Positions 35,643 through 55,845 of a stretch of 64,000 nt of DNA are shown here, in pieces; position 1 is the stretch's first letter, and the number at the start of each line of letters is the position of its first letter. Where the stretch lies: positions 186,001 through 250,000 of IMG/VR virus record IMGVR_UViG_3300017917_001123; one strand, given 5' to 3'. The notes under the pieces are model-generated. The model saw only the letters and a program-made list of their open reading frames with translations. It searched no databases and had not been told where the DNA came from. A program made the translations under genes and the position numbers.

Positions 35643-36080
35643 TCACATCAATGCTGGTTCAGCGTTGGCCAAAATGTCCTCGACCTTAGACATTGCTTCT
35701 GCCTCAGACTGAACAGCAGTCTTGACAGAGGCCTGACCAGTCTTGGTCTTAGCCTTAGCTTCCTTCTTAGCAGGAGCCTTAGCCTTAGCCTTAGTTGCCT
35801 TAGCCTTAGGAGCAGCCTTAGCCGGCTTAGCAGTAACGCCACGCTTGTCAGCCGCCGCTTCGAGAGCCGCTTGGACTTCTTTGTTACCGTTGGCAAAGTC
35901 GATGCTCAACAGGAACGCTACAGCGTCTTCCTTAGACATCGGGTGACGCAACTCGACGATGTCAATGTCCTTGTGGCCATTCTTGGCAAGTACTTTGACA
36001 CGCAGGGCATCGTTACAGAAACGAACCTTGAACTCACCATTCAAGCGCGAAACACCAGCATGAGAAAAAACGTTAGACAT
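35643..36080 (-). CDS. Protein with histone-H1-like Lys/Ala tail
   Basis: AKPAKAAPKAKATKAKAKAPAKK encoded by AAGGCT repeats. Confidence 0.75.
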   Translation of the reverse strand: MSNVFSHAGVSRLNGEFKVRFCNDALRVKVLAKNGHKDIDIVELRHPMSKEDAVAFLLSIDFANGNKEVQAALEAAADKRGVTAKPAKAAPKAKATKAKAKAPAKKEAKAKTKTGQASVKTAVQSEAEAMSKVEDILANAEPALM

Positions 36081-36169
36081 AAAATACCTTTCTGTGTGTG
36101 TTTAAAAAGTTAACAGCAATCTCTTACTGTTTTAATAGTATAGCACCAAAATGCCCAAAAGTCAACCCC

Positions 36170-36340
36170 TTAGGCGCCATAGTAAGGGCTGAATTCCTCA
36201 TCGGATTGTGGCTTAAATGCCACATCTTTGAGTTGTTTAACGGTCCAATCCATTGCCGCCGGATTGGGCTCAAATTCCGGCACTCCGTCCTCAGAAACAT
36301 CGTAGTCCGTGTCCTCGGTGATCATTGCGAAACGACTCAT
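36170..36340 (-). CDS. Small acidic protein (56 aa, not in ORF track)
   Basis: Manual translation MSRFAMITEDTDYDVSEDG...PYYGA. ATGA overlap with the upstream gene. Confidence 0.6.
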   Translation of the reverse strand: MSRFAMITEDTDYDVSEDGVPEFEPNPAAMDWTVKQLKDVAFKPQSDEEFSPYYGA

Positions 36341-36525
36341 AGCTCTACCTCCTCATCAATTACTTCAATGTCAGTGATCCGAAACTCACCTGCGTCTGTG
36401 CTGACCCCACAAAACGCATCTCGGAAACTTTGGTTCTCAGCTAGGAAGTTATAGACATCCTGCTTGTCAGTGCCCTCAGGCACTTCAATCTCTTGCCTAA
36501 GGGTTGTGGTTACCATTACCTTCAT
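36337..36525 (-). CDS. Small acidic protein
   Basis: ATGA-coupled 62 aa ORF. Confidence 0.65.
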   Translation of the reverse strand: MKVMVTTTLRQEIEVPEGTDKQDVYNFLAENQSFRDAFCGVSTDAGEFRITDIEVIDEEVEL

Positions 36526-36908
36526 TCGTCTGCCTCCAGTGCTTCGTGTTCAAACGCATCAGTCAGCAAGCCGTTAAACTCGCCGTAGAACTCAACATAC
36601 CACTTGCCGTCTTTGCGGAGGATGTAGTTGTATTCCTCTCCTTGTGCTTCGCGACGGTACTCTGCGAAGTCCTTGTACATACGCTGAGGGCAGTCCTCGC
36701 CACGTTCCTTGTAGAAAGTACAACCGCTAACAGTTTCGTCCAGCGAGCTCATGTCGCCGTTGTCCAACAGCTCGCGGACCAGGAACGGGTCTGTGTAGTG
36801 GTTCTGCAGAATCTTGCCGTTGTGATCCAAGTAGCCGTCCCAGTGGCAGTAAATTTGACCAACAGTACCGTCTGCGTACTCCAGGGCGATAGTAGAACGA
36901 GTTGCCAT
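36522..36908 (-). CDS. Phage early hypothetical protein
   Basis: MATRSTI...IYCHWDGY..HNG motif. Own promoter. Confidence 0.8.
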   Translation of the reverse strand: MATRSTIALEYADGTVGQIYCHWDGYLDHNGKILQNHYTDPFLVRELLDNGDMSSLDETVSGCTFYKERGEDCPQRMYKDFAEYRREAQGEEYNYILRKDGKWYVEFYGEFNGLLTDAFEHEALEADE

Positions 36909-36989
36909 TTATGAGCTCCTTTTGTTTCAGTGTGTATGTATTATATGACCAATTTACCAGTTTGTCAACCAACCCTACAGCCTGTAGGG

Positions 36990-37352
36990 TTATTGTTGCT
37001 CAAAAGCCACAGTAACGTCGACCTCAATGTCCGTAACATCGCCAGCAAGGTCAAACTTCAAGCCGGTAACAGCCGCGCCGTATTGTGCGGCCTTAAGGCG
37101 GCGCTCAACTTCGTGGCGCAGGTCGCCCAGCATATCGTTGAGAAAGTCCTGTGCGCTGTCTTTAACGCCTTTCAGCGTCTCTTGGATGCCGTTGCGGCTC
37201 ATGTCCTCTTGCCCGTCTACGATCATGTCGATAAACGCTTCGGTCTGACCAACGAGGGCTTGCTCAACAATAGCGTCGATCAGCTCGCGCTTTGCCCACA
37301 GGATCTCGCTGGCCTTAAAGGTCTGCTCACGTGCCTTGTAAACAACAGTCAT
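36990..37352 (-). CDS. Early hypothetical protein
   Basis: Own promoter and RBS. Confidence 0.75.
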   Translation of the reverse strand: MTVVYKAREQTFKASEILWAKRELIDAIVEQALVGQTEAFIDMIVDGQEDMSRNGIQETLKGVKDSAQDFLNDMLGDLRHEVERRLKAAQYGAAVTGLKFDLAGDVTDIEVDVTVAFEQQ

Positions 37353-37409
37353 TTCTTGCTCCTTTTCCTAACTGTCTAGCCTATAGTATAACACCGGTTT
37401 TACCACTTG

Positions 37410-37655
37410 TCAACCGATATCTGCAGTAACCCTGTTCTCTGTAGGGTTATAGGTCAGGAACACTTTGCCAAAGGTAGCACCGCGCCCGTCTTCGTCGTGG
37501 TACTCTACTTTGTAGCAAAACTGTCCGCCGTTGGTTATGCCCAGGAACTTGGCACCCTTGAACGCCATCATCTTGTAACCGCAGGAGTCCAAGGTCATAG
37601 CTAAGGTGTGGGTGCTGTAGCTGGTTAGGAGTTTGAGTGTTTCAGCAGTAATCAT
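37410..37655 (-). CDS. Early hypothetical protein
   Basis: ATGA-coupled. Stop lies in the next promoter's TTGACA. Confidence 0.7.
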   Translation of the reverse strand: MITAETLKLLTSYSTHTLAMTLDSCGYKMMAFKGAKFLGITNGGQFCYKVEYHDEDGRGATFGKVFLTYNPTENRVTADIG

Positions 37656-37897
37656 CCCAGCACCACCACTTCTGTGCCCTCAACAACAGGCTCGCCTTCG
37701 TCATCGTAGTCAAAGTCGTCTTGGTCTACGACCTTGTGCATACGGTGGTAGTCGCTGTACTTGACATAGCCTACCTCTACGCTGTCTACAGTAGGAGCCA
37801 CTTGAGTGCGCCAGTGGTCGCCGTAGTTGTATTGGAAGTGGACTTCGGCGTCCGGGTTCTCCATTTGTAGCAGTTCAATGAGCTCGGAAACTTTCAT
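37652..37897 (-). CDS. Small acidic early protein
   Basis: MKVSELIELL...PDAEV N-terminus. Confidence 0.75.
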   Translation of the reverse strand: MKVSELIELLQMENPDAEVHFQYNYGDHWRTQVAPTVDSVEVGYVKYSDYHRMHKVVDQDDFDYDDEGEPVVEGTEVVVLG

Positions 37898-38142
37898 GCT
37901 TGCTCCTTAAAGTAAACGACTTTGATGCGTCCGTTAGTTTGTACGAAAGCACAGTTGTCTTCAAACTGTACATCCGGATGGGCTAGGACCTGCTTAGTAA
38001 ACATTTTAACAGTTCGCACGTTAACGGCACCCTGCCAATCCTCGCGGGCCACGCCCTCATTGTAACTGTACTTGCCGCGGCAACCGCACATGCAACCTAC
38101 TTTGCCCGAATAAACTTTTGCAACTTTGCTGACGTTTAACAT
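37894..38142 (-). CDS. Early protein with CMCGC motif
   Basis: YSGKVGCMCGCRGKY. Own promoter and RBS. Confidence 0.75.
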   Translation of the reverse strand: MLNVSKVAKVYSGKVGCMCGCRGKYSYNEGVAREDWQGAVNVRTVKMFTKQVLAHPDVQFEDNCAFVQTNGRIKVVYFKEQA

Positions 38143-38238
38143 TTCTGCTCCTGCTTGTTTAGTGTATGTGTGTAGTATAACACAAATGGTTTTACCTGTC
38201 AACCCCTTTTATAAAAGCCCTTTCGGGCTGTAGGGTTA

Positions 38239-38388
38239 TTAGGCAGGTACTACTTTAATAAGCATAAAACTGTTTAGGCTGTTAAGTTCCTGATGGAACG
38301 CGGCTACAGCTTGTTTACGTGTGCAAGGGCGTGTTAGGGCTGTATGCACTTGGTTTTTGTAGTAGTAATGTATAACGTATTGTTTCAT
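38239..38388 (-). CDS. 49 aa basic early protein (not in ORF track)
   Basis: Manual translation MKQYVIHYYYKNQVHTALTRPCTRKQAVAAFHQELNSLNSFMLIKVVPA. Own promoter and AGGAG. Confidence 0.7.
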   Translation of the reverse strand: MKQYVIHYYYKNQVHTALTRPCTRKQAVAAFHQELNSLNSFMLIKVVPA

Positions 38389-38438
38389 GGTCGCTCCTTT
38401 AGTGTATGTGTGTAGTATAACACACTTTTACCAAAGTG

Positions 38439-38660
38439 TCAACCCCAAGCGTTATATAACCCTATAGCGCATACGGATATAGCTACAACGTTAACAATGA
38501 ACTGTGGCTTATTTGCCACACGTATAGTCCATGTCAAGTACAGTAGCCCGCCTAGCAAACCAAACAGGGGGTCCAACTTTAGCTCCCTGTAAAAGTTCAT
38601 CAACACGTACATTGCCAAGATGCAGGCAGTGCCTGCCCACTGTAGTACTGTATTAAGCAT
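38439..38660 (-). CDS. Small three-TM membrane protein
   Basis: Hydrophobic. ATG overlaps the upstream stop. Confidence 0.7.
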   Translation of the reverse strand: MLNTVLQWAGTACILAMYVLMNFYRELKLDPLFGLLGGLLYLTWTIRVANKPQFIVNVVAISVCAIGLYNAWG

Positions 38661-38832
38661 TGTCAAATTCCATTACGTCACAACGCAAGTCGTCTACAAT
38701 GTCCTCAATCCTATTGTGCGTCTCATAGCACACGTCACTGTCACCCAGCACCTCTTGTATTAATGCGTCCGCATCCTCTAGCAAATCTATTGCCTCACGC
38801 AGTTTAGCTGCCTTTTGTTTTGCTGTTAACAT
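38653..38832 (-). CDS. 59 aa acidic helical early protein (not in ORF track)
   Basis: Manual translation MLTAKQKAAKLREAIDLLEDADALIQEVLGDSDVCYETHNRIEDIVDDLRCDVMEFDNA. Own promoter and AGGAG. Confidence 0.75.
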   Translation of the reverse strand: MLTAKQKAAKLREAIDLLEDADALIQEVLGDSDVCYETHNRIEDIVDDLRCDVMEFDNA

Positions 38833-38917
38833 GTTCGCTCCTTGTTGTTTAGTGTATGTGTGTAGTATAGCACAGTTTTACCACTTTGTCAACTGTGCTA
38901 TACAATAACCCTATGCT

Positions 38918-39283
38918 TTAGTCAACTACGTGCACGTCAGCAAAACTAGCATAGCCAAACTTAGCTTCCCAGCTAGCAATAAAGTCTCTGCCTACGTCTA
39001 AGCTAACAAAGTCATCACCCTGCATGCCCTGCTCGCTATAGCACAAGTCTACAACAAGCCCATGCTCTGTAATAAACTGCATTAAGTCTATTTTAAATTG
39101 TTTGTCTGTGTAAATTAGCCCGTCTTTATAAACGTCCCAAGTGTCTGTGTTAAAAAACACACGCAGTTCCCCATACTCCTTGTCCTCGCTAACAAAGCCC
39201 AAGCGCATGTCTGTAATCTCTACAGCTTTTTGCACGTTGCTCCAGTAGCCATCGCCGCTAGTGTTAAAAATAACTTTTTGCAT
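38918..39283 (-). CDS. Acidic early protein, 121 aa, proline-free
   Basis: TSGDGYWS...GLIYTD...YSEQGMQGDDFVSLDV. Own promoter and RBS. Confidence 0.8.
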   Translation of the reverse strand: MQKVIFNTSGDGYWSNVQKAVEITDMRLGFVSEDKEYGELRVFFNTDTWDVYKDGLIYTDKQFKIDLMQFITEHGLVVDLCYSEQGMQGDDFVSLDVGRDFIASWEAKFGYASFADVHVVD

Positions 39284-39382
39284 TTGTTTGCTCCTTGCAG
39301 TGTTTAAGTGTGTAGTATAGCACCAATTTACCACTTTGTCAACTACTACGTAAAAAAACCCTACGCAGGGTAGGGCTATTGT

Positions 39383-39655
39383 TTAAATGTTAGCTATAAC
39401 ACGAACGTATTGGAATCCGGCGCAACGGGTAGCAAAATTGCGTACAGAACCCGAACGCTTTACAGGGTTTTTAATTGTACTACGCAAAAAGTTATACAAT
39501 ACATCGGCGGAACTGGCATTGTTTAAAACAAAAGTAACACTACGACGCGGATTACTAGTGTTTGCTTTTGTTTTAAGCGTACGGTCGGTATATGTACGTA
39601 CATAGTTTACATTTGCTGCACGTGCTACAGCGCGGACTTGTTTAGTGCTTAACAT
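39383..39655 (-). CDS. Basic early protein, 90 aa, glutamate-free
   Basis: Own promoter and AGGAG. Confidence 0.7.
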   Translation of the reverse strand: MLSTKQVRAVARAANVNYVRTYTDRTLKTKANTSNPRRSVTFVLNNASSADVLYNFLRSTIKNPVKRSGSVRNFATRCAGFQYVRVIANI

Positions 39656-39703
39656 ACTTGCTCCTTTAGTGTCTGTGTAGTATAGCACCAATTTACCAGT
39701 TTG

Positions 39704-40228
39704 TCAAGTCTTTTTGTAAAAAATATGCTGTCCAATCTGTTGTATTTTCACAACACTCCTTGACCAAATAGGTTCTTTAATGTAGTCCGCATGATAGAAG
39801 GTACTATGTTCCAACCCTGCTACCCTATAGCCCTCCTGGAGCACCTTGTGAGCAACCTCCTTGCTTTCTGCCCACAAAGGCCCTTTAGGTTGAGCATAGC
39901 GTTTCTTCTTGTCCAATGTCCAGCTGAACTGAGCCCGAGCATAGACAACCTTACATATATCAGTACCCCAGCGTTTCTCCTTTAGTCGATTGAGTGTTAC
40001 CTGTGCGACAGCAAACTTACCTAACCGGTCCTCCACACCGGCTTCATAGAAAATGTTCTTGGCCAAACAGTCTGCTTCAGCAGAAGTATGCTGAACACGC
40101 TGTTGAGTCTTGATCAAATAGATCTTGATCTCTTGTATGTCATCGTGAAGGGTAGAGATCTCCAGTTGCTGGAACGCCAGGATGGCGAACATGGCCACCC
40201 CAGCTAGGATCTTCCATATGCCGTTCAC
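39704..40228 (-). CDS. Cell wall hydrolase (SleB/Hydrolase_2 family)
   Basis: CLAKNIFYEAG, AVAQVTLNR, ICKVVY..AQFSW, IGQHIFY. N-terminal TM segment. Confidence 0.9.
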   Translation of the reverse strand: MNGIWKILAGVAMFAILAFQQLEISTLHDDIQEIKIYLIKTQQRVQHTSAEADCLAKNIFYEAGVEDRLGKFAVAQVTLNRLKEKRWGTDICKVVYARAQFSWTLDKKKRYAQPKGPLWAESKEVAHKVLQEGYRVAGLEHSTFYHADYIKEPIWSRSVVKIQQIGQHIFYKKT

Positions 40229-40851
40229 TTGTGTGGCTCCAAGTTGTTCTTCTCTACACCGTCCTTATACCAGTCGGTGAGTTCCTCGTCCTCTTCGTCC
40301 TCATACTCGGCCATAGACTCGGAGATGCCATACTCATCATCCAGTTCGTCGCCAACGACATCACGCACGGTTTTAGAAGTCTCACCGCCGAACTCAATAC
40401 ACTCGTCACTGCCGTTATACCAACGACCTACATAGGCCATGCCTGGTTCGTAGTAGGTAGCCTCTACTTCAAAGCCGTCATCTACTAGGGCCTCGTAGAT
40501 GCCTACGGGCGGGGCCCACGCAGAGTCAAAGCCGAACTCAATGGTGTTGTTCTCAATCTTTATATCAGGGTCGTAGGCATCAACATCCCACTTGGTGCCC
40601 CAATGATTCACGCAGAAGTCATACCAGTTGGCCACACCATATTTGGCAATGTTCTCGGCACTCCGGCGCTCGAGCTCAATCTGGTCCGGATTCGTTTCGT
40701 CACCAACTCGACCTGCTACAATGTTCAGGTCCTCTGGAATCGGAACCACATGCTTACAGAAGTTGCCTTCCTTAATGGCCTCAACGAGGGCTTCAAGTTT
40801 CTGGGTATCTTCGTGGCTGATTACCACACGGTTGTTGCACCAATTAGGCAT
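40225..40851 (-). CDS. DUF1281/YubB-like ferredoxin-fold protein
   Basis: MPNWCNN, WYDFCVNHWGTKWD, FDSAWAPP, YYEPG motifs. Confidence 0.8.
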   Translation of the reverse strand: MPNWCNNRVVISHEDTQKLEALVEAIKEGNFCKHVVPIPEDLNIVAGRVGDETNPDQIELERRSAENIAKYGVANWYDFCVNHWGTKWDVDAYDPDIKIENNTIEFGFDSAWAPPVGIYEALVDDGFEVEATYYEPGMAYVGRWYNGSDECIEFGGETSKTVRDVVGDELDDEYGISESMAEYEDEEDEELTDWYKDGVEKNNLEPHK

Positions 40852-40861
40852 AGTAGGCTCC

Positions 40862-41125
40862 TTAGTTGAATTCGTAGAAAGTGACGCTAGGATCGATGCT
40901 TTGGAGTTCTTGAGCACAACGGCGCAGGAACTGGGCACGGGCACGGACTTGGCTTGCGGGCAGTTCGCCATCGCAGGTAAGGTTCTCTGGGCTAAGATCC
41001 GCATCCAGCGAATCCGCAATCTTTTGACGGTCCTGGGCGTTGAGCAGGCTGAGCTCCTTGCCGTTGAAAATTTTGGACCAGCTGTTTTTCATTTCAACAT
41101 AGGTTTCCAAGTTCTGAATATTCAT
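40862..41125 (-). CDS. Early hypothetical protein
   Basis: LSPENLTCDGE motif. Own promoter and RBS. Confidence 0.75.
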   Translation of the reverse strand: MNIQNLETYVEMKNSWSKIFNGKELSLLNAQDRQKIADSLDADLSPENLTCDGELPASQVRARAQFLRRCAQELQSIDPSVTFYEFN

Positions 41126-41182
41126 TTTCGCTCCTGTTTCGTTAGTGTCTAGTGTATAGTATAACATCGGTTTTACCGGATG

Positions 41183-41377
41183 TCAACCCCTTTTGGTAAC
41201 TTTTTTAACTAATACGAAAGTACGACCACGCAAATCGAACTTCAAAGGCTTATTGAACACCTTGTGCTCGTTGGTGTCTTTTTTGACATAGGCTAGGCAC
41301 TTGTCCCCGTCTAGGAGGTACAGGTGGTTACAGTCCGACCCGTCCTCCCAAACTGTAGTCTCACGCATCCACTTCAT
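41183..41377 (-). CDS. Early hypothetical protein
   Basis: ETTVW...NHLYLL...FDLRGRTF. Confidence 0.7.
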   Translation of the reverse strand: MKWMRETTVWEDGSDCNHLYLLDGDKCLAYVKKDTNEHKVFNKPLKFDLRGRTFVLVKKVTKRG

Positions 41378-41631
41378 TACATGCTCCAGTAGGCTTCTGA
41401 GCTGGGCGAGCAATAGCGCGGAGTGTCATAGCGTTCCTTATACTCAGCACCGCCCATCAAGTTCTTGCGAGTTACATAAGTTTCGTGGATTTCGCGAATG
41501 TATCCTGGGCGAACTGGGTTGGCTCGCTCCACAGCCGCCAGCGTCATGTCCGCAAAGTCCGTCTTGGACACCAGCTTCATGCCCTCTTTGCATCGCTTGT
41601 CCAACTTATAAATTTCTACGGTATATTCCAT
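41377..41631 (-). CDS. Early hypothetical protein
   Basis: Ends DTPRYCSPSSEAYWSM. Own promoter. Confidence 0.75.
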   Translation of the reverse strand: MEYTVEIYKLDKRCKEGMKLVSKTDFADMTLAAVERANPVRPGYIREIHETYVTRKNLMGGAEYKERYDTPRYCSPSSEAYWSM

Positions 41632-41755
41632 GTCGCTCTCCTTAGTGTCTAGTGTATAGTATAACACAGGTTTTACCACTTGTCAACCAAAAAAAGAGGG
41701 TGTTGCTTTTATACAACACCCCCATAAAGGGCCTGCGTTGCACAGGCCGGAGCAA

Positions 41756-42103
41756 TTAATCCAATCGGCTACCTGCGTAGGCTTCCACGCCCAACATCTG
41801 CTTCAGGAACTCTGCGGCCGCCTCGGCACCCGCTTCCAAAGTGTCCACGTTCTGGACGCCCAAACCACTGGGGTTCCACAGCTGAAGTCCACCACCGTAA
41901 GCAGGACGGAAACCTGCCTCCTTCAGTGCCATACCCAGTTTGGTGTTGCCACGAACCTTGTAGACCGTAACCCAAGCAAAGCCACAGGCGTATTGGTCAC
42001 GTCCGCCCAGCTTCTCCTGGAAGAACTTGGTTGCCGCTTGACGGGCTTCCTGCTTGGCACCCTCAACAAAACTCAGAACCTGCTCTTTAGTGAATCCACT
42101 CAT
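41756..42103 (-). CDS. Early hypothetical protein
   Basis: ACGFAWV...AYAGSRLD. Own promoter. Confidence 0.75.
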   Translation of the reverse strand: MSGFTKEQVLSFVEGAKQEARQAATKFFQEKLGGRDQYACGFAWVTVYKVRGNTKLGMALKEAGFRPAYGGGLQLWNPSGLGVQNVDTLEAGAEAAAEFLKQMLGVEAYAGSRLD

Positions 42104-43802: not shown

Positions 43803-43879
43803 TGGTGGGCCCAACAGGACTCGAACCTGTGACCAAGCGATTATGAGTCGCCTGCTCTAACCAACTGAGCTATAGGCCC
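43803..43879 (-). tRNA. tRNA-Ile2 (CAT, lysidine type)
   Basis: GGGCCTATAGCTCAGTTGGTTAGAGCAGGCGACTCATAATCGCTTGGTCACAGGTTCGAGTCCTGTTGGGCCCACCA. Cloverleaf with encoded CCA. Anticodon arm matches E. coli ileX as recalled. Confidence 0.9.
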
Positions 43880-47265: not shown

Positions 47266-47823
47266 TTGACCCTGAAAATTGCTCAAAGCCTATTTGATCT
47301 TGTAGAAGGTTCTGTGCTAGAGCTGGGCTCGCATGACGGGTCGTGGTTTACCCAGTATCTAGTTGATCGTGCTGGTAGTGTCTGCTGTATAGAGCTAGAT
47401 GGTATTGCCCTAGCCCGTGTACGTGAACAATGGCCTAGAGTGCGCTGTCTACAAGCAGACTTTCATCAGGCTGTTTCGGGAGTGGGTTGTTACGATAACG
47501 TAGTTCTCTTTGGTGTGTTAGGTCATACCCCCAACCCACTGGGCTTGTTAGAAGATATTGTACACTATGTCAAACCCCGGCGTATATTCCTAGAAGCAGA
47601 GCCCGGAGGTGTTGTGCGTTGCGTTAGGGAGGGTGTTAATCAACCCGGACAGCGTCAAAGTCGTAGGGCTACCTGTGGACTCAGCATACAGTTAGGCACA
47701 CGCATATATACGGATGCTCTGGCTAATTTGGGCTACAAGCCCATTAGGACTTATAGGGAGTCAGAGGGCATCAAACAAGGATTAGAATACACAGTCTATG
47801 ATCTACACACAACAAGCACGTAG
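47266..47823 (+). CDS. Class I SAM-dependent methyltransferase
   Basis: VLELGSHDG, IE, YDNVVLFGVLGH motifs. Confidence 0.75.
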   Translation: MTLKIAQSLFDLVEGSVLELGSHDGSWFTQYLVDRAGSVCCIELDGIALARVREQWPRVRCLQADFHQAVSGVGCYDNVVLFGVLGHTPNPLGLLEDIVHYVKPRRIFLEAEPGGVVRCVREGVNQPGQRQSRRATCGLSIQLGTRIYTDALANLGYKPIRTYRESEGIKQGLEYTVYDLHTTST

Positions 47824-48934
47824 CATTCCGCCCTATACAAATACCCAGGCCTACGATAAGTTTACTAGGTTGGACAATCAGCCCGTGTTTCTCTACGATG
47901 AGTTGGACAGTACCGTACACGGAGTAGAGCCCGTAGATGCTTTCAATGAGCAGGTATGGGCAGAACTAAGGGTAAATCCTGAAGCCCGACTCTTGATCAA
48001 CTTCCCCGGGGACTTTCTAAATCTACACGATATATCTAAACTAAAGCTGGCCCAAGAGCAACACTCTATACCCGCAGATCGTATCTGGGTCATAGTCATG
48101 GACGCTAACGTTGTGGACTTTGTGGAACAGCGTTGGCAGGGTGTTAGGGTCTGTGCCTATAACTTATTGTTGGCTAGAATACAGATACCACACGTTGGTA
48201 ATCCAGGCGATCAGCGTTTCAGTGTCCTGAGCCGTAACTATAGACCCTGGCGTTTAGAGTTTTACCTACATCTGCTCAAGGCAGGGGTGCTGGATCGCAC
48301 GGTCTACAGCTTTCACAACATAGACCCTTACCTTACTGGCAAAAGCATCTACACCGCAGAAGATCTCTACAACGATGCTCGCAATGCGGGCTTTGACATC
48401 AAGGACAGCCAACTTAGAAACTGGTTTGCGGGCATACCCTACGATCTACCCAACAGCAATAAGTTCAACAAACATCACAATGCTACCTACGATGCTATCC
48501 GTCGTGCGGGGGTACACCTGTTAATTGAAAGCCATTTTGATCCCTACATTTACTGGCCCAGCTACAGGCATATGGACCCTCGTGAGTTTAGCCCAGGATT
48601 CCCTACAGAAAAGACCTACAAGGCCATGGCCTGTGCTCGTCCATTTATTGCTGTGACCACACCTTACTTCTTAGAAAGTGTTAGGGCTCTGGGCTTTAAA
48701 ACATTCAGCCCTTGGATAGACGAAAGCTATGATACTATTGTAGATAACCGGGCTCGTATGCGGGCCATTGCTGATGAAGTAGCCAGACTAAACAGCCTAG
48801 ACCCAGAAGAGTTTCAGACCCTGTTCTATAATCTAAGCTCTGTAATTCTACACAATTATAATTGGGTACAAGAACTACAACGCAGAAACACCCTGCCCGA
48901 TAACTGGGCCTGGCTCAAGGAACACATAGAATGA
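47798..48934 (+). CDS. Glycosyltransferase-like protein (GT10-like C-terminus)
   Basis: IES...FPTEKTYKAM...PFI...GFKTFSPWIDESYD...HNY. Confidence 0.6.
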   Translation: MIYTQQARSIPPYTNTQAYDKFTRLDNQPVFLYDELDSTVHGVEPVDAFNEQVWAELRVNPEARLLINFPGDFLNLHDISKLKLAQEQHSIPADRIWVIVMDANVVDFVEQRWQGVRVCAYNLLLARIQIPHVGNPGDQRFSVLSRNYRPWRLEFYLHLLKAGVLDRTVYSFHNIDPYLTGKSIYTAEDLYNDARNAGFDIKDSQLRNWFAGIPYDLPNSNKFNKHHNATYDAIRRAGVHLLIESHFDPYIYWPSYRHMDPREFSPGFPTEKTYKAMACARPFIAVTTPYFLESVRALGFKTFSPWIDESYDTIVDNRARMRAIADEVARLNSLDPEEFQTLFYNLSSVILHNYNWVQELQRRNTLPDNWAWLKEHIE

Positions 48935-49683
48935 AACTAGCACAAGAGCTCTACGAATACTTTAATACCCTACACGTCAAATACCCACCCAAGGAGTATA
49001 GGGTAGATTGGCAAGAAGGTAAACCCGTACCCTACCTAGTTATAGATAACTTCTTACCTGATCATATCTACAGGGCCGCACAGGCAGAGATAAAAGATAT
49101 ACCCCCACATCAATGGACACAGTTCACACGTAGGGGTAGCCTAATGAATGAGTGTAAAAATCTAGCAGGTGCGCCCATACTACAGACCTTAACCCACTGC
49201 TTTAATAGCGGTGTGTTCTTAGATTGGCTAGAGGGCTTTACAGGCTTAGAACGTGTTATATCGGATCCACGACTTGTGGGTGCGGGCTTGAGCACATGCC
49301 AACCCGGGCATAGCCTAAAGCTACACACAGACTTTAACTGGAACGAACAGCTACATCTTAATAGGGCTATGAGCCTTATTCTATACCTAGCCCCTGAATG
49401 GGACCCTGCTTGGGGTGGGGGACTAGAGTTCTGGGACTTTGAGCGTACCCAATGTGTTAGCAAAGTGGACTGTTTGCCTAATCGCTTGTTGTTGTGGCTA
49501 TATGACGAGCGCCTAATACACGGCTACCCAGAGCCTATTCAATGCCCCCAAGGGCATCAACGTGAAAACCTGCGCTTGTTCTACTACAAGAGTAACAGCA
49601 CCCCCGAGAGCCAGCCACATCGCTCACTGTACTGGTGGGACGAGGCCCTAAAGGCCCCGTACGATGTTAGAACTGAAAAGTAA
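48931..49683 (+). CDS. 2OG-Fe(II) oxygenase (Oxy_3-like)
   Basis: LHTDFN, WGGGLEFW, NRL, HGYP...R motifs. Confidence 0.9.
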   Translation: MKLAQELYEYFNTLHVKYPPKEYRVDWQEGKPVPYLVIDNFLPDHIYRAAQAEIKDIPPHQWTQFTRRGSLMNECKNLAGAPILQTLTHCFNSGVFLDWLEGFTGLERVISDPRLVGAGLSTCQPGHSLKLHTDFNWNEQLHLNRAMSLILYLAPEWDPAWGGGLEFWDFERTQCVSKVDCLPNRLLLWLYDERLIHGYPEPIQCPQGHQRENLRLFYYKSNSTPESQPHRSLYWWDEALKAPYDVRTEK

Positions 49684-50511
49684 TTAGAATGTGCCGTTGT
49701 TAGCACGTTCCGCTAGAACAAAAGGATTATTCCATTGCTGTAGTTCTGGAATGCTCTGTACTAGATAGGGCTTGTTAAGGGCTTGAGCAATAGCACAGAC
49801 CCAACCGTTTGGTGTACAGATAGTTTGGTTCATACCACTGATCCACTGTGCTAGTTCTCCAGGGTGATCTACTTCTACGTGGCTAGTTTGAATTTTAGTT
49901 ACATTCTTGAACTCTTGATATTCGGACTTTGTGCCTACAAATACGCTGACAGCACCTACGTTCTGTTGGGCCCATTGACTGTAGACATCTCTATCTTCCC
50001 ACCCAGAACCGGCAAACACAACACCCTTGCCCTGCGGGCGTCCTGGAATAGCAGGAATGTCTAGCCAGCTGTTCATACGGATCTGTTGCCACTTGGTCCA
50101 GTGAACATGCGTTACTTTACCAAAGCGATCCATGGGATGCATGTTAAAGCGATTGTCCATGTCTATAGTATAATCAATCTTATCTAAGTCATGATCTACA
50201 ATTTCGCCTGCCCATACATTCACACTCTTAACCCACTTTTGGTTTTGTACCAATGAGCAGATAACATCAAAGTCATCTTGATTTAGACGACCCTGCCATT
50301 CCGGTGTAGCGTACTGCCCTTTGTAGTATAGGGTCTTTGGCGGAATCAACCCTAGGGCAATATAAACATGCCCACCCCCAAGTGCTTTGACATAGGCCAT
50401 TGCTTGGATTACTTCAATGGGTGTTCCAGAAATCTTAAATGTAGTTTCCCCGTAAGCGTGTTCAGGGTTGAACAAGGGGTTTGCGCTGTGATCGGTATGT
50501 TCTAGTTTCAT
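49684..50511 (-). CDS. Degenerate GT9-like protein, paralog of 28667..29494
   Basis: Shared LGGG, GRL.Q.DF, VW.GE, VFVGTK.E, ELA..I.G, AIAQ.L. Confidence 0.65.
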   Translation of the reverse strand: MKLEHTDHSANPLFNPEHAYGETTFKISGTPIEVIQAMAYVKALGGGHVYIALGLIPPKTLYYKGQYATPEWQGRLNQDDFDVICSLVQNQKWVKSVNVWAGEIVDHDLDKIDYTIDMDNRFNMHPMDRFGKVTHVHWTKWQQIRMNSWLDIPAIPGRPQGKGVVFAGSGWEDRDVYSQWAQQNVGAVSVFVGTKSEYQEFKNVTKIQTSHVEVDHPGELAQWISGMNQTICTPNGWVCAIAQALNKPYLVQSIPELQQWNNPFVLAERANNGTF

Positions 50512-50536
50512 ATGGATATTTAACTTGGTATATAAC

Positions 50537-50565
50537 TTGACAGAAAATTTTCTGCCTCGTATAAT
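50537..50565 (+). promoter_or_regulatory. Consensus sigma70 promoter
   Basis: TTGACA-17-TATAAT. Confidence 0.85.
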
Positions 50566-50600
50566 TCTAACATAACTATTATAAAGGAGTCAAACTTAAT

Positions 50601-50795
50601 ATGTTAAAACCAGGTCCAAACTACAGGATGAGCGCACAGGCAAAACGTTTTCTTGCTACCATCATCGATCCGCACAAACGTGGCGAGTTTAAACGTGCTA
50701 CTATTCAAGCAGAATTAGCCGCTCAACTTCAACCTAAGCGTGAGAAAAAACCACGTAATGGTAACTTCGTCCAAGACAGTAGCGCAGACGAATAA
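50601..50795 (+). CDS. Small basic protein
   Basis: AGGAG RBS after a consensus promoter. Confidence 0.7.
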   Translation: MLKPGPNYRMSAQAKRFLATIIDPHKRGEFKRATIQAELAAQLQPKREKKPRNGNFVQDSSADE

Positions 50796-50951
50796 AACCC
50801 GTTATAATAGAGTGAATGGCCAAAAATGACCGTTTTTGGCCTATTATTTTGCCCGATATTAAAATAGGGCACTAACTAAAACTACGCTCTTTAAATTTTT
50901 GGAGTTTACACACACTGACAGCGTAAAAATAACTTAAAGGAGGACAGCGAC

Positions 50952-51623
50952 ATGTCTAAAATACACAGAGTTTTTACTGTGCTATTAGCATTAGCGGCCC
51001 TGACCGTAACGGTACCCGGTCAAGCCGAGACCCCGACTCAAGAGGGTCAATATTTTGTAGTCTCAGAAGTTAGCGATAGACTACAATCTTTTGTATCATC
51101 GATAACACAACCTGTTATCAACGTAAAAGACCTAACATGTCTTGCTCGTAACATTTTCTTCGAAGCGGCGAATGAGCCTGAAGAAGGTAAAGTAGCAGTT
51201 GGTCTAGTCACATTGAATAGAGTACAAGACGGACGTTTTGGTAATTCTATTTGCGGTGTAGTAGATCAGCGTTCTACAAGAGTAGTCGAACGTGAGAATA
51301 CCCGTGTTGTTAAAACAGTATGGGGTACTAAGACAGAGAAGTTTACAGTCTTAGAAAAGATCACGACATGCCAATTTAGTTGGCGTTGTATGTCTACTAG
51401 AAATCCCAAACCTCATGATGAAAGATGGCTTGAAAGTCAAGAAATAGCACGAAACTTGCTTGCCAGCAAATACACCTACGAGGATTGGAGATACAAATAT
51501 GCTGAAGCTTTATATTTCCACGCAACCGGTATTCGCCCTTCTTGGGCAAAACAAAAGGAACACGTAGGTCGTATAGGCGGGCATAAATTTTACGCAGAAA
51601 AGGAGAAGCTTGTCAGTTTCTAA
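50952..51623 (+). CDS. Cell wall hydrolase (SleB/Hydrolase_2 family), second copy
   Basis: Signal peptide. CLARNIFFEA, AVGLVTLNR, CQFSW, IGGHKFY motifs. Confidence 0.9.
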   Translation: MSKIHRVFTVLLALAALTVTVPGQAETPTQEGQYFVVSEVSDRLQSFVSSITQPVINVKDLTCLARNIFFEAANEPEEGKVAVGLVTLNRVQDGRFGNSICGVVDQRSTRVVERENTRVVKTVWGTKTEKFTVLEKITTCQFSWRCMSTRNPKPHDERWLESQEIARNLLASKYTYEDWRYKYAEALYFHATGIRPSWAKQKEHVGRIGGHKFYAEKEKLVSF

Positions 51624-51634
51624 TAAATACTGAC

Positions 51635-51847
51635 ATGAGAGCACATGAATTCATTACTGAAAAAACAGACCCAAAACTTTGTCGTTCTACCAAACGTCTT
51701 GGAAGAAGCGACCAGAGTAGTTGCGTGTCTCAGGGATTACGTCCACACCATAGTGGTAAAACTTTTAGAGGTCAGCCTATCAAGCACAAAAAGATAAAAG
51801 GCTCTAAGTATGGTGGACCACTTCCCGATTATGACGGTAAAGAGTAA
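51635..51847 (+). CDS. Small basic late protein with MRAHEFITE leader
   Basis: TAAATA-N5-ATG start. Capsid-targeting-like N-terminus. Confidence 0.65.
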   Translation: MRAHEFITEKTDPKLCRSTKRLGRSDQSSCVSQGLRPHHSGKTFRGQPIKHKKIKGSKYGGPLPDYDGKE

Positions 51848-51892
51848 ACCATAAAACGTTTTTAACCACTTGGCCCCCGGCTAATTAAGATT

Positions 51893-52651
51893 ATGAAAAT
51901 AGTTTTAGTTACCGGGGGTTTCGACCCTATACACTCTGGACACATTGAATATCTTGAAGCCGCAAAGGAATTGGGCGATGAGTTAGTTGTCGGACTTAAC
52001 TCCGATGAATGGTTAGAACGTAAAAAGGGCAGAGCATTTATGCCCTTTGAAGAACGTCAAGCCATTATGCTTAGTATCAGACCAGTCAACTGGGTAATCA
52101 ACTTTGATGACGAAGACGGCTCTGCTAGATTTGCTATCCATGCGGTCCGTGAAAAGTTTCCGGATGCTACAATTATTTTTGCCAACGGCGGAGACCGCAC
52201 AGAAGATAATATTCCTGAAATGGATGTCGAAGATGACAATATTGAATTTGTATTTGGTGTTGGTGGCAAAAACAAAAAGAACTCTAGCAGTTGGATATTA
52301 GAAGAATGGAAGGCACCTAAAACAGAACGTCCTTGGGGATACTATCGTGTATTACATGAAGTACCTGGTACTAAGGTTAAAGAGTTAACAATTGAGCCTG
52401 GGCAGAGTTTGAGTATGCAACGCCATGCCGATCGAGCAGAGTTTTGGTTAGTAACAGAAGGGCAATGTGAAGTACGTCAACAGATGTCTAGTGGATACAC
52501 CATTCCGCCTGTTGTATTACAAACACACGACGGTATAGAAATATCAAAAGGCGAATGGCATCAACTAGTGAACCCTTTTAAGAAACCATGTCGCATTGTT
52601 GAAATACAATTTGGCGATCGATGTGTGGAAGAAGATATCGAGAGGAAGTAA
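51893..52651 (+). CDS. Cytidylyl/adenylyltransferase (HxGH) fused to type II phosphomannose-isomerase cupin
   Basis: GGFDPIHSGH, GLNSD, NGGDR, then ERPWG, SMQRH..RAEFW, IVEIQFG..EEDIER. Confidence 0.9.
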   Translation: MKIVLVTGGFDPIHSGHIEYLEAAKELGDELVVGLNSDEWLERKKGRAFMPFEERQAIMLSIRPVNWVINFDDEDGSARFAIHAVREKFPDATIIFANGGDRTEDNIPEMDVEDDNIEFVFGVGGKNKKNSSSWILEEWKAPKTERPWGYYRVLHEVPGTKVKELTIEPGQSLSMQRHADRAEFWLVTEGQCEVRQQMSSGYTIPPVVLQTHDGIEISKGEWHQLVNPFKKPCRIVEIQFGDRCVEEDIERK

Positions 52652-53544
52652 TGTATAAGTTTATCGATCCAAAGATTAACTCAGGCGACAAACTTATTAT
52701 TGGAATTGGCGACAGTTACACACAGGGTATTGGTGCTTACACAGATGCTACTTGGAAGAAACACAATGGCCGTATTCCTGTATATACTAGCGATAAAGAT
52801 CTAATTAAAGAGCAGTACGAAGGAAGTTGGGTCAATCAAATACAATCTTTGATGCCGGGTTGGAAAGGCCTTAACTTAGGTGTAGCAGGAACAGGCAATC
52901 GTTCGGCATTGAAAGAATTATACTTCCATGAACCAACGATAGCAAAAGCTAGCGAAGCCGTTGTTGTTTATCTGTTAAGTGGGTTTGAACGTTTTGATTT
53001 TATCTCAAAAGAGTTTGTCAGCGAACACGCACACTTTGAAGCTATGTGGCCAAACTATTGGGATACAGGCTGTAAAGTTCCTGAGCTGTGGAAAGCCTAT
53101 GCTGACCATGTACACTCAGATAGATTTATGGCCGGCGAGGCAATGTTAAACATTTTAGAAGCACAGATGTACTGCCAAGCTAAGGGATTTAAACTCTTGG
53201 TCATTAGCGCATTTGATACTCGCTTTCAACGTAGATGGTTTGATAGAAATTTAGTACAAGGTCTGTTTAATCTAAAGCCAACAGGAACAAACATAGACTT
53301 TATAGATCAGTTTGATTGGTCACAGGCAGTATATCCACAAGGGTGTTCTACAATTATTCATTTGTTAACTAGACTAGAAGGACACGATGATTCTATGGCC
53401 GAAGGCAGATTCTACGGTCATTATAGTAAATTGGATTTTCCATCAGAATATATCACCACTTGTGTTCACCCAACCCGCAAAGGTCATGCTATAATAGCAG
53501 AAGAAGTTGTAAAAGCAATTAAAGAACGCGGCTATGAAAATTGA
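52651..53544 (+). CDS. SGNH/GDSL hydrolase-like protein
   Basis: IGDSYT, NLGVAGTGN, HPTRKGH motifs. Confidence 0.75.
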   Translation: MYKFIDPKINSGDKLIIGIGDSYTQGIGAYTDATWKKHNGRIPVYTSDKDLIKEQYEGSWVNQIQSLMPGWKGLNLGVAGTGNRSALKELYFHEPTIAKASEAVVVYLLSGFERFDFISKEFVSEHAHFEAMWPNYWDTGCKVPELWKAYADHVHSDRFMAGEAMLNILEAQMYCQAKGFKLLVISAFDTRFQRRWFDRNLVQGLFNLKPTGTNIDFIDQFDWSQAVYPQGCSTIIHLLTRLEGHDDSMAEGRFYGHYSKLDFPSEYITTCVHPTRKGHAIIAEEVVKAIKERGYEN

Positions 53545-54127
53545 TACTGAACACTTACATTATTGGATGATGGCTATTAGACAAAGTCCAGATCCTATTC
53601 GTACAATGGATGCCTTTTGGCAAGGACAAATGAAAAGCAAGGAATGGCTTGTTGATGAACTCCGTGCTTCTGTCAACAGTCCTGTGAGCATTGACATACA
53701 CGGCGGCTGGGTAGGGGTCTTAGCAAGTATGATATTCCAAAGCGATATCATTACCAAACACATTCGTAGTGTTGATATTGATCCTACATGCGAGCCTATT
53801 GCTACAATGATGAATAAAGGCGAAGAGATAGTAGGTAAGTTCCGTGCTGTTACCGCCGACATGTGTGCTATCCGTAGCGATGCTGATGTTGTTATTAATA
53901 CAAGTTGTGAACACATTACACAAGAACAATTTGACTTTTGGAAGACTGGCATTCCTCACAATAGTCTTGTTGTACTACAGAGCAACAATTACAATATACC
54001 AGAACATGTTCGTATTGCTAATAGCCTAGATGAGTTTAACAAACAATGCGACCTACGTATTGTTTATTACAAAGGCGAACTTAAACTGCCCAACTATACT
54101 AGATACATGATTATTGGTTACGCATGA
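53534..54127 (+). CDS. SAM-dependent methyltransferase-like protein
   Basis: IHGGWVG, VDID, VINTSCEH, RYMIIG motifs. Confidence 0.7.
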   Translation: MKIDTEHLHYWMMAIRQSPDPIRTMDAFWQGQMKSKEWLVDELRASVNSPVSIDIHGGWVGVLASMIFQSDIITKHIRSVDIDPTCEPIATMMNKGEEIVGKFRAVTADMCAIRSDADVVINTSCEHITQEQFDFWKTGIPHNSLVVLQSNNYNIPEHVRIANSLDEFNKQCDLRIVYYKGELKLPNYTRYMIIGYA

Positions 54128-55179
54128 CATACCCTTCAGACATTAAAGCACTAGCAATGGAACTAACTGACAAGTGTCAGGCTAGTTGCCCTATGTGTCT
54201 GCGTAATCATTTTGGTGGAGCAGAAAGAGATATTGTCAACAATGTAGAAATAACATTGGCTGACTTCAAGCAATGGTTTCCTCCAGAGTTTATTTCTAAC
54301 TTAGAAAACTTTTATTGCTGTGGTAACTTAGGCGATCCTGCTATTGCTAAAGACTGTTTAGAGATATATCAATACGTCCGTAGTTGTAATCCTACTACAC
54401 GAATGGCTCTACACACAAATGGCAGTATGCGTAATCCTGAATGGTGGGCTAAGTTTGCTGAGATCAACACACAGATTATCTTTGGCATTGACGGGTTTAA
54501 AGGAGAGCATGAACTGTATCGCAAAGGAACTAATTGGGATAAGATAATTGCCAATGCTCGTGCGTTTATAGATGCCGGTGGCGATGCTAGATCTGATACC
54601 ATTGTATTCAAACACAACGAAGCACGTATTGATGAACTAAAGGCTTATCTAGAAAGCATCGGCTTTAAGGGTGTTAATGTATTTGCTACTAATCGGTTTT
54701 ATTCTCTGCCTGTGTTTCCTGTACAAGATAGAAACGGTAATCACATCTACGACTTAGAGCCCCCTACAGATCCAAAGTGGCATCCTGTAGTGTTTAAGCC
54801 TAACACAGTAAAGCTAGTTCAAAAAGAAGAATATCAAAAGCTAATTGATCACAGCGTTATTGAACCTAGCTGTGCTATTAAGAAAGAGATATACATCACA
54901 GCCAAGGGCGATGTGTATCCTTGTTGCTGGGCAGTTAACCATAACGACTACGATCACAAAGAACTAGATCCCAATCTTTCTATCCTGCGTGACAGATTAG
55001 TAAAGTCTACATTTGACCTAATGAGTGATATTGGGTTGCCTAACCTACACGGCAGTAATATCTTTACTGTAATGAGCAAGCACAATTGGCAAAGCAAGTT
55101 GCCTAAGCATTGGGATACAGACAAGAAGTTAATCTGTATTAAGAACTGTGCTAAGAACTTAAAACAACTCGCAGAGTAA
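54124..55179 (+). CDS. Radical SAM protein with C-terminal SPASM/twitch
   Basis: CQASCPMC, GNLGDP, HTNG, IDG, GDVYPCC, C..NC. Confidence 0.92.
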   Translation: MTYPSDIKALAMELTDKCQASCPMCLRNHFGGAERDIVNNVEITLADFKQWFPPEFISNLENFYCCGNLGDPAIAKDCLEIYQYVRSCNPTTRMALHTNGSMRNPEWWAKFAEINTQIIFGIDGFKGEHELYRKGTNWDKIIANARAFIDAGGDARSDTIVFKHNEARIDELKAYLESIGFKGVNVFATNRFYSLPVFPVQDRNGNHIYDLEPPTDPKWHPVVFKPNTVKLVQKEEYQKLIDHSVIEPSCAIKKEIYITAKGDVYPCCWAVNHNDYDHKELDPNLSILRDRLVKSTFDLMSDIGLPNLHGSNIFTVMSKHNWQSKLPKHWDTDKKLICIKNCAKNLKQLAE

Positions 55180-55833
55180 TTCTACTCCGCGCTGTCTAAT
55201 TCTTTCAATAACAGGGTTAATGACTTCATGGTCGCAGTTTAGGAATAGTTCCTTTTCGTTTGGTGATTCAAAGCCAGTGACCTGTTTGCTCTTAACAAGT
55301 TTGTTGATAGTGCCCATTAGTTCAATATAACTAGCCTGCTTCCAATCAATAGGACCATCTACTACTTTAAGATGTACTCCTTGTTTATTTGATTCGAAGT
55401 GTGGCAATAGAACTCTAATGTTAAGATGTATTCTAGGCACACCACCCCAGTTAGCCGCAACGTGTGTTTGACTAGTGTCCATATACCATGTGCGTCCGTC
55501 TGCGGGGATATGATGTAGGCGATTGTTTGTAATATCTACAAGGTAACTGTGTTCGTTAGTTATAATTGGTAAATGTATTCTATCATCTGGATCGGTGTGT
55601 GCTGTATAACTTTCTCCACTACCTAGTGTTAATAGTCTTGCTTGTCCTATATTAGGTAACACAGCTAATACATTGCCTAAAGGTGTGCCAACAAACTCTT
55701 CCTTTGTTTGCCAAGGGTCGTTAAAGAATTTACCAGTGGGCCTATTAAGATCGTATCGCTTATCTAATGTAAGGCTAAGCACTTGATCTACAATAGGTTG
55801 AATTGGAAATTTGTGTTGGAGTTCTGTTAGCAT
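55159..55833 (-). CDS. Asp/Asn beta-hydroxylase-like 2OG-Fe(II) oxygenase
   Basis: HTD, RIHLPIITN, H.A.N.G..PRIHL motifs. Confidence 0.75.
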   Translation of the reverse strand: MLTELQHKFPIQPIVDQVLSLTLDKRYDLNRPTGKFFNDPWQTKEEFVGTPLGNVLAVLPNIGQARLLTLGSGESYTAHTDPDDRIHLPIITNEHSYLVDITNNRLHHIPADGRTWYMDTSQTHVAANWGGVPRIHLNIRVLLPHFESNKQGVHLKVVDGPIDWKQASYIELMGTINKLVKSKQVTGFESPNEKELFLNCDHEVINPVIERIRQRGVELLCELF

Positions 55834-55845
55834 TTAAATATATTT

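Follow-up and report, generated by a model that had tools for sequence, protein, structure and literature searches.

The window analysed here is a stretch of 64,000 nucleotides (bases 186001–250000) of one linear viral record of 331,570 bp in IMG/VR, about 93% complete and obtained from a pond metagenome. From about 36 to 42 kb, short genes stand in an array on the minus strand of the window, and most of them are equipped with a near-consensus sigma-70 promoter of their own and with AAGGAG as ribosome-binding site. One of them, referred to as the focal gene, encodes a basic protein and is nearly devoid of the dinucleotides GA and GG in its sense strand; it is followed by two genes that are devoid of TC and CC. 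These classes are abbreviated as GR (GA/GG) and YC (TC/CC), GR on one strand being YC on the other. The focal cassette is composed as follows.

39679–39707, minus strand: promoter of the focal gene (TTGACA, 17 nt, TATACT, a TG preceding the -10 hexamer; 11/12 matches)
39661–39667, minus strand: Shine-Dalgarno sequence AAAGGAG, read from the sequence
39383–39655, minus strand: focal gene, 273 bp, 90 amino acids, isoelectric point (pI) 11.6
39350–39377, minus strand: intrinsic terminator of the cassette, consisting of a stem of 8 bp and a run of T

Because the terminator lies directly after it, the focal gene forms a separate transcription unit, and equivalent hairpins were present in the orthologues. 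AAGGAGC was found upstream of every orthologue. The focal promoter is one of five near-identical promoters in 38.1–39.7 kb, with the same arrangement at orthologous loci. The focal gene is a genuine early gene that encodes a conserved protein and possesses a consensus sigma-70 promoter, a Shine-Dalgarno sequence and a terminator of its own. In its 5' untranslated region, GR is limited to the Shine-Dalgarno sequence and one leader GA (in cagaca). From about 36000 to 42000 on the minus strand, there is approximately one promoter per short gene, and these promoters are near-identical (TTGACA-17-TATACT/TATAAT, with TG and a conserved GGTAAAACC-like spacer). Similar promoter arrays occur in relatives, whose loci are numbered L002 to L018, at L012 1300–12400 and L014 640–12900, with about 20 promoters per 12 kb. 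Directly upstream, the focal cassette adjoins a gene for a SleB-type cell-wall hydrolase (39704–40228, minus strand; Pfam Hydrolase_2, PHROG endolysin), and a second gene of this type lies at 50952–51623 on the plus strand.

The focal protein lacks Glu, as had been noticed in a preliminary description of this DNA, and also Trp and internal Met. An AlphaFold 2 (AF2) model with a mean predicted local distance difference test score (pLDDT) of 78 showed the order alpha-beta-beta-alpha-beta-beta, and nothing significant was found in PHROGs, Pfam, Foldseek searches of PDB and AFDB, or the ESM Atlas. The gene was unmatched in deposited phage genomes, in searches for near matches as well as at the protein level, and an IMG/VR search returned no relatives. 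Many freshwater runs do hold sequences related to the phage, and 13 metagenomic orthologues of the focal protein were recovered at 54–83% identity, besides a distant group at 45–49%. In a freshwater metatranscriptome library (run X21), contigs about 88% identical to window positions 39462–39660 (focal gene) and 38991–39256 (the neighbouring gene for a 121-residue protein) were present. As these matches are contigs only and about 88% identical, they are compatible with expression of relatives in nature and are not proof of transcription.

The plus strand of the focal gene contains exactly six YC dinucleotides, at 39416, 39417, 39450, 39451, 39504 and 39585, corresponding to six GR in the sense strand. 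The preliminary description had reported about six, all at two Asp and two Gly codons. This placement is essentially right. Four of the six are obligate, being required by those Asp and Gly codons; the other two, at the last position of a GGA codon for Gly and at the junction TCG|GGT, are optional. The single CCGG that had been noted as remaining is indeed found at 39417. Both optional sites (39416–39418 and 39450–39453) were kept in all close orthologues, as an invariant Gly80 GGA codon and a [T/A]CG|GGT junction at residues 68–69; they may serve a function as nucleotides or simply have been inherited.

Windows of 273 bp across the genome contain on average 22.8±7.3 YC, and just 0.08% contain six or fewer. 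With 2.2% GR, the sense strand of the focal gene has the lowest value among the 365 open reading frame (ORF) calls of the whole genome (mean 11.3, standard deviation 2.2); for a typical gene of equal length the figure is about 31 GR. For an expectation at fixed protein sequence, synonymous codons were redrawn according to genome usage or the usage of neighbouring early genes. The first gave 14.8±2.9 GR (P about 7×10−4) and the second 18.4–18.9 (P < 5×10−4), against the six observed, so that the check proposed in the preliminary description, an amino-acid-preserving shuffle, places the depletion beyond composition. Codon junctions of the type G|R occurred once against 3.6 expected (P = 0.02), and this deficit was still seen when the gene's own codons were shuffled. 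Arg is encoded by CGT or CGC at all 11 positions. The observed/expected ratio for GR of 0.41 is the minimum of the genome (0.99±0.12); among the other basic proteins (pI > 9.5, n = 32) the ratio was 1.00±0.23, with 0.70 as the next lowest value. When all 16 dinucleotide classes were ranked over the 365 ORFs, the three lowest ratios belonged to two neighbours of the focal gene (YC 0/15.6 and 0/8.0) and to the focal gene itself, followed by a value of 0.53. The three most dinucleotide-depleted genes of the genome thus adjoin one another.

Amino-acid composition accounts for roughly half of the depletion of the focal gene and codon choice for the rest. Composition explains no more than about half because neither the distant orthologues nor the other basic proteins of the genome are depleted. 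The preliminary description had named a composition shared with orthologues at unbiased loci as a possible full cause, which would refute its claim. This is not borne out: the distant orthologues L010, L012 and L014, whose composition is less extreme, showed no synonymous depletion (P about 0.35). They have more Asp, Glu and Gly and use CGG and CGA, and the close group has Gln, Asn or other residues where they have Glu, Asp and Gly.

The DNA of the focal orthologue was fetched for seven close members of the group. Each contains 5–9 GR, all below the protein-preserving expectation (P 0.0003–0.009), and 18–60% of the codons for shared residues differ. Since the depletion persists through this synonymous turnover, it is maintained by selection. 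In the seven genes, the 51 codons ending in G were followed by C (29), T (15) or G (7) and never by A, and pooled G|R junctions numbered seven against 22.2 expected. The purge of the focal gene acts on dinucleotides and not on codons. GA was hit hardest: pooled over the family, 23 GA were counted against 67.3 expected, and 23 GG against 33.1. Of the GA only eight were non-obligate, seven of which belong to one conserved GGA codon. The observed/expected ratio was 1.00 for AA and 0.65 for AG, GC (1.23) and GT (1.17) were enriched, and YC was about as expected. For this message, the depletion exceeds what the protein needs and is stronger for GA than for other purine pairs.

On the same strand, the focal gene is followed by a block in which the opposite purge is found. 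Its features are the following.

38626–39368, read on the plus strand: run of 743 bp free of GA/GG, the sense strand being without TC/CC
38918–39283, minus strand: acidic protein of 121 amino acids, pI 4.3, no Pro; YC 0 against 15.6–24.4 expected
38653–38832, minus strand: acidic helical protein of 59 amino acids, pI 4.1, no Pro; YC 0 against 8–12.9 expected
38439–38660, minus strand: membrane protein of 73 amino acids, partial YC depletion (10 against 21.6)
38239–38388, minus strand: basic protein of 49 amino acids, pI 9.8, a second GA/GG-poor gene (GR 3 against 9.1, P = 0.001)

The 743-bp run spans promoter P4, the 121-residue gene, promoter P3, the 59-residue gene and 28 nt past the last stop. 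It is unique in the 331,570 bp, where the next-longest run of any comparable class measures 158 bp. The 49-residue gene has its own promoter. The orthologue of the 73-residue membrane protein is almost YC-free in L006 and normal in L002 and L005, and the genes flanking the recoded block have an ordinary composition. Two claims of the preliminary description hold in this block: each cassette keeps GR and YC essentially on one strand, and the purged strand switches between co-oriented genes.

The 121-residue family comprises 1855 homologues, and Pro was absent in 92 of the 120 sampled. Its members in environmental phages are 70–85% identical and share the invariant residues W14, E39, W49, Y58, D60, Y82, E84 and Q85. 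The AF2 model reached a pLDDT of 90; no known fold or significant family match was found in PHROGs, Pfam, Foldseek (PDB/AFDB) or the ESM Atlas. In other jumbo-phage contigs the family has 1.1–1.7% YC. A distant homologue in Xanthomonas phage X1 has an ordinary 11.3% and uses TTC, ATC, GTC, ACC and GCC freely; an invariant Ser of the family is encoded by TCA in this phage and by AGC in all purged members.

Similar blocks were found in the relatives. Genes with 0–2% TC/CC follow the focal orthologue or another small basic gene in L006, L008, L014, L011 and L004, and the YC-free runs extend over 761 nt in L006, 487 nt in L008 and 307+148 nt in L014. Basic and acidic genes are often adjacent, as a toxin-antitoxin-like pair would be, but not always, the downstream gene being ordinary in L005 and L009. 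Three basic families without detectable homology are GR-poor (the focal family, a 71-residue family and one designated B2, which lies upstream of the 121-residue gene in L007, L016 and L018), and several unrelated acidic proteins are YC-free. This sharing of depletions by unrelated families indicates convergence, so the pressure lies outside the proteins. The B2 genes of L007 and L016 are depleted in GR and YC alike, which speaks for two independent pressures more than for a rule by which one purged strand suffices. A GIY-YIG-like gene lies in or beside the recoded block at L006 1529–1846, L007 562–879, L016 3150–3467 and L018 3390–3719, the assignment being based on a faint Pfam match in L016 and L018. 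It has an ordinary composition, and the depletion therefore belongs to particular genes and not to the whole region.

The YC-free run starts 26 nt upstream of the -35 box in the window and 14 nt upstream in L008. In L006, L011 and L014 it starts inside the promoter spacer, whose untranscribed part tolerates a YC. As these boundaries track the promoter and the last purged stop, the transcript is favoured over the duplex. A recoding of 1.5 kb makes sense only as a service to the expression of the genes concerned, which also favours the transcript. The dinucleotide exclusion is conserved, selected, and strand- and transcript-specific.

The reading we prefer is avoidance of target sites in the message, to which we give a probability of about 0.4: a single-stranded RNA factor directed at GA, and less at GG, would be evaded by the focal message, and a reader of YC by the neighbouring ones. 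Action on RNA and the nature of the agent are what we infer here. Selection has recoded the sense strand of the focal gene against GA and, less strictly, GG, through synonymous sites, codon junctions and amino-acid replacement (Glu to Gln, Asp to Asn, loss of Gly). An endoribonuclease or base-modifying enzyme of this specificity would then meet almost no site in the focal coding sequence, and with target sites nearly absent the protein would still be made while other messages are hit. The unit of the 121- and 59-residue genes would be guarded alike against a 5'-YC reader, either the primary clefts of the termination factor Rho or a YC-directed RNase or modifier; complete removal of YC is better fitted by the latter. 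The protein would limit which purge is possible. Acidic proteins need GAN codons and could shed Pro and the TCN codons of Ser, and basic proteins could shed Asp, Glu, Gly and Trp; Pro alone is strictly tied to YC. The cost of such coding would be proteins that forgo Pro, Glu, Asp, Gly or Trp. In general terms, a freshwater jumbo-phage clade may 'stealth code' a small block of its early messages, without GA/GG for basic and without TC/CC for acidic proteins, against an RNA-directed host factor, a proposal that we put slightly below even odds.

To our knowledge, CmdT is the sole bacterial reader of GA in messenger RNA (mRNA) that has been described experimentally. It ADP-ribosylates the adenine in GA and thereby blocks translation, does not act on double-stranded RNA, and yields substantial product with GA only and faint product with other purine pairs (PMC11618068). 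The gradient of the depletion, much stronger for GA than for GG, matches this preference and was counted in favour of a CmdT-like reader. Most of the GR left in the focal cassette, in the ribosome-bound Shine-Dalgarno sequence and the terminator stem, fits a reader of this type as well. RhsP2 is an RNA-directed bacterial effector acting at UAAG, and the primary-site clefts of Rho bind 5'-YC (PMC6144790).

Several points weigh against avoidance in the message. No reader of GA or of YC has been identified for the phage or its host. Immunity to a GA-directed modifier would be incomplete, since the GGAG of the Shine-Dalgarno sequence and the leader GA are kept. The evidence of the boundaries for RNA over DNA amounts to a few tens of nucleotides, and the focal gene shows no clear avoidance of YC (21 against 20.5–29.8 expected). 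The recoding is confined to a block of 1.5 kb, and no protein function has been assigned that would justify its protection. Finally, GR and YC are exact reverse complements, a coincidence of about 2–6% if two unrelated RNA readers are involved, which hints at a single cause at the level of the duplex or centred on Rho.

The main rival is a single cause centred on Rho, and we regard it as unlikely. The YC-free neighbours with more G than C would be Rho-proof, and the focal and 49-residue genes either Rho-prone or Rho-proof in antisense; adjacent cassettes would differ in how their expression depends on Rho and on being coupled to translation. YC dimers promote loading of Rho and GA/GG-rich RNA opposes it, and %YC, %GA and %GG rank with the descriptors that best discriminate Rho termination (PMC6144790). 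The C-G skews of the 121- and 59-residue genes (-11.7% and -13.9%) are the most negative of the genome, that of the 59-residue gene being the minimum; the 49-residue gene has the maximum (+12%) and the focal gene +3.3%. The YC-free run extends from the promoter to just beyond the last stop, and the neighbouring unit has the sequence features of Rho resistance, with zero YC over 743 nt from the promoter and no region of C over G. A cause of this kind would account for GR and YC being reverse complements. Against it, Rho needs several spaced YC dimers, and purging all of them over 743 nt exceeds what evasion requires. A Rho-prone design predicts loss of G and gain of YC, and the focal family enriches GC and GT at about the expected YC. 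Strong ribosome-binding sites should let translation shield the genes, and the antisense version lacks a plus-strand promoter.

The preliminary description had assigned the one-sidedness a purpose in the DNA, namely the removal of palindromic sites and of nicks that could pair into double-strand breaks. In the form considered here, GA/TC and GG/CC steps kept in one orientation would block sites that require both strands (palindromic or head-to-head restriction sites, paired nicks, excised lesions), and the needs of the protein would pick the strand to be purged. The two purges are exact reverse complements, and acidic genes lose YC and basic genes GR as if either purge sufficed. Palindromes with the steps concerned (CCGG, GATC, GGCC, TCGA) did virtually disappear, with one in 1030 bp against 9.4±3.9 expected, which is a logical consequence of the purge. 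The remaining twelve palindromic tetramers, with 72 against 45±7.6, are more frequent than expected, and so are hexamers, with 18 against 8.2; the idea of palindrome removal fails for these. Step-free palindromes in window 38626–39655 (AGCT, ACGT, GCGC, TGCA, GCTAGC and others) place it in the top 0.2% of genome windows. The rationale of DNA breaks is also weak on other grounds. Shielding 1.5 kb of 331 kb, or 0.5% of the genome, gives no obvious benefit, and in long relatives (L012) the promoter array does not have the block at its leading end. The doubly depleted B2 genes would be needless under a one-strand rule, YC is tolerated in untranscribed promoter spacers, and inverted orientations arise anyway where oppositely purged segments meet. 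No DpdA/TGT or C5-methyltransferase was found in the phage; a 7-deazaguanine modification at GA/GGC by DpdA was rejected, as PF01702 had no match in the 331-kb record and the controls matched in 14/14 genomes. Taken with boundaries that point to the transcript, this makes a purpose in the DNA improbable.

The recoded genes may themselves encode an RNA weapon, for instance a host shut-off protein that binds or cleaves GA, with messages that lack their own target, an option that we likewise judge improbable. The strongly basic focal protein has a modelled small alpha/beta fold as in nucleic-acid binders, with no significant match, and the 121-residue protein shows uncommonly high conservation, many of its polar residues being invariant. 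Self-avoidance is opposed by the number of families: at least three unrelated basic and several acidic families share the two depletions, which makes a common specificity unlikely. All remaining messages of the phage would be hit as well. No nuclease or transferase motif was found, and modelling the basic and acidic neighbours as a three-chain complex was uninformative, with a score of 0.01. Phage-encoded RNases of the barnase/T1 or PemK type had no match. The searches for RegB and EndoU were uninformative, with no match in the phage and none in the control genomes either.

It is very improbable that protein composition, or optimised codon use in a strongly expressed gene rich in Arg, produced the depletion as a by-product. 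By composition alone, the expected GR falls from about 31 to about 15, and the restriction of Arg to CGT and CGC removes about 4–5 expected GR. Against this, early-gene codon usage raises the expectation, as given above, and the tests on junctions only, in which codon usage is ignored, were significant. Such a by-product is largely refuted by the comparisons with orthologues, junctions and other basic proteins.

Cytosine deaminases that act on single strands classically target TC/CC, which is GA/GG on the opposite strand, so that the affected context would fit a mutational footprint of an APOBEC-like enzyme or of transcription-coupled deamination, a hardly credible explanation that is largely refuted by the absence of its products (AA at the expected level in the focal family; TT 0.84 and CT 1.00 observed/expected in the YC-free genes, whose cytosines are relocated to GC, 1.51, and AC, 1.24), by the switch of Ser from TCN to AGY, which takes two or three changes, by replacements such as Glu to Gln and Gly to Phe or Thr, which are not G-to-A changes, and by opposite strands being hit in co-oriented genes with ORFs, promoters and invariant residues intact. 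The argument of the preliminary description against a simple transcription-coupled mutation bias is borne out, such a bias being excluded by the same lack of AA/TT gain, by the choice between AGC and TCA for Ser and by the survival of the depletion through 18–60% synonymous turnover.

Other candidates were rejected. Unstructured mRNA is not the aim, as the purged coding sequences fold at -0.23 to -0.28 kcal/mol per nt, about as their neighbours do and not more weakly than synonymous resamples. Opening of the ribosome-binding site (-18 to +6) takes 4.5–7.6 kcal/mol, within the range of the other cassettes, so the purge does not serve to free it. Antisense transcription would need a plus-strand promoter, which is absent, and the antisense ORF of 72 codons is not conserved. 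An origin of the focal gene as an inverted copy of a YC-free gene was rejected because no similarity was found, and a replication origin between the segments is contradicted by L005 and L009, where the focal gene stays GR-poor beside an ordinary downstream gene.

Elsewhere in the window, a cluster at 47800–62000 contains three radical-SAM/SPASM enzymes, a 2OG-Fe(II) oxygenase and a cytidylyltransferase-cupin fusion with a mannose-6-phosphate isomerase-like cupin, as well as a weak match to GDSL hydrolases below the Pfam cut-off. A tRNA-Met is located at 43803–43879.

If target-site avoidance in the message is true, it would be the bacterial counterpart of CpG and UpA avoidance in animal viruses. 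Dinucleotide-specific host effectors (CmdT-like transferases, HEPN-type RNases, Rho) would then be a major force on phages that is legible from sequence, and target-free coding would flag the phage genes that are needed while an RNA-directed defence or Rho is active. This would offer a sequence-only route to candidate counter-defence genes and, from phage genomes, to the specificity of host effectors. Selection on nucleic acid can also reshape proteins: the 121-residue family with its 1855 homologues is almost free of Pro, and in one basic family Glu has disappeared along with most Asp and Gly.

Depletion of dinucleotides is familiar from animal viruses, where CpG is lost against ZAP, UpA against RNase L and TC against APOBEC3. 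The resemblance lies in the removal of a two-letter target, synonymous sites included, for escape from a dinucleotide-specific host factor. The present case differs in that it concerns a phage and only a handful of neighbouring short genes instead of the entire genome. It also affects one strand, goes down to zero and leaves its mark on the proteins, which lack Pro or Glu. The strong preference of CmdT for GA, with faint activity on other purine pairs, parallels the excess of GA over GG depletion in the focal gene. The escapes from CmdTAC known in T4 work via proteins and not through recoding (PMC11618068). No CmdTAC has been linked to the host of this phage, and the GA of the Shine-Dalgarno sequence is kept.

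Phages counter Rho by anti-termination, as with N and Q of lambda, or with Psu of P4, through proteins or structured RNAs. The neighbouring transcript, devoid of YC and with G over C, should by its sequence be a very poor substrate for Rho (PMC6144790), which would resemble such evasion. Removing all YC from the message differs from the known counter-measures, and it concerns the neighbours, the focal gene being involved only as the mirror image. Phages also avoid restriction sites or use sites in one orientation, for example T7 against type III enzymes. Some messages lack the recognition sequence of MazF-type toxins (PMC5408214). In both cases a recognition sequence is lost by selection, and a bias in orientation can defeat enzymes that need two sites, as could be the case here. 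Those motifs measure 3–7 nt and are avoided on both strands or genome-wide, whereas the present exclusion concerns a dinucleotide class on one strand of a transcription unit, with unrelated palindromes enriched. Depletion of this kind in phages was not found described in the literature searches; as far as this literature extends, the phenomenon is a variant of sequence-target avoidance that is new for phages.

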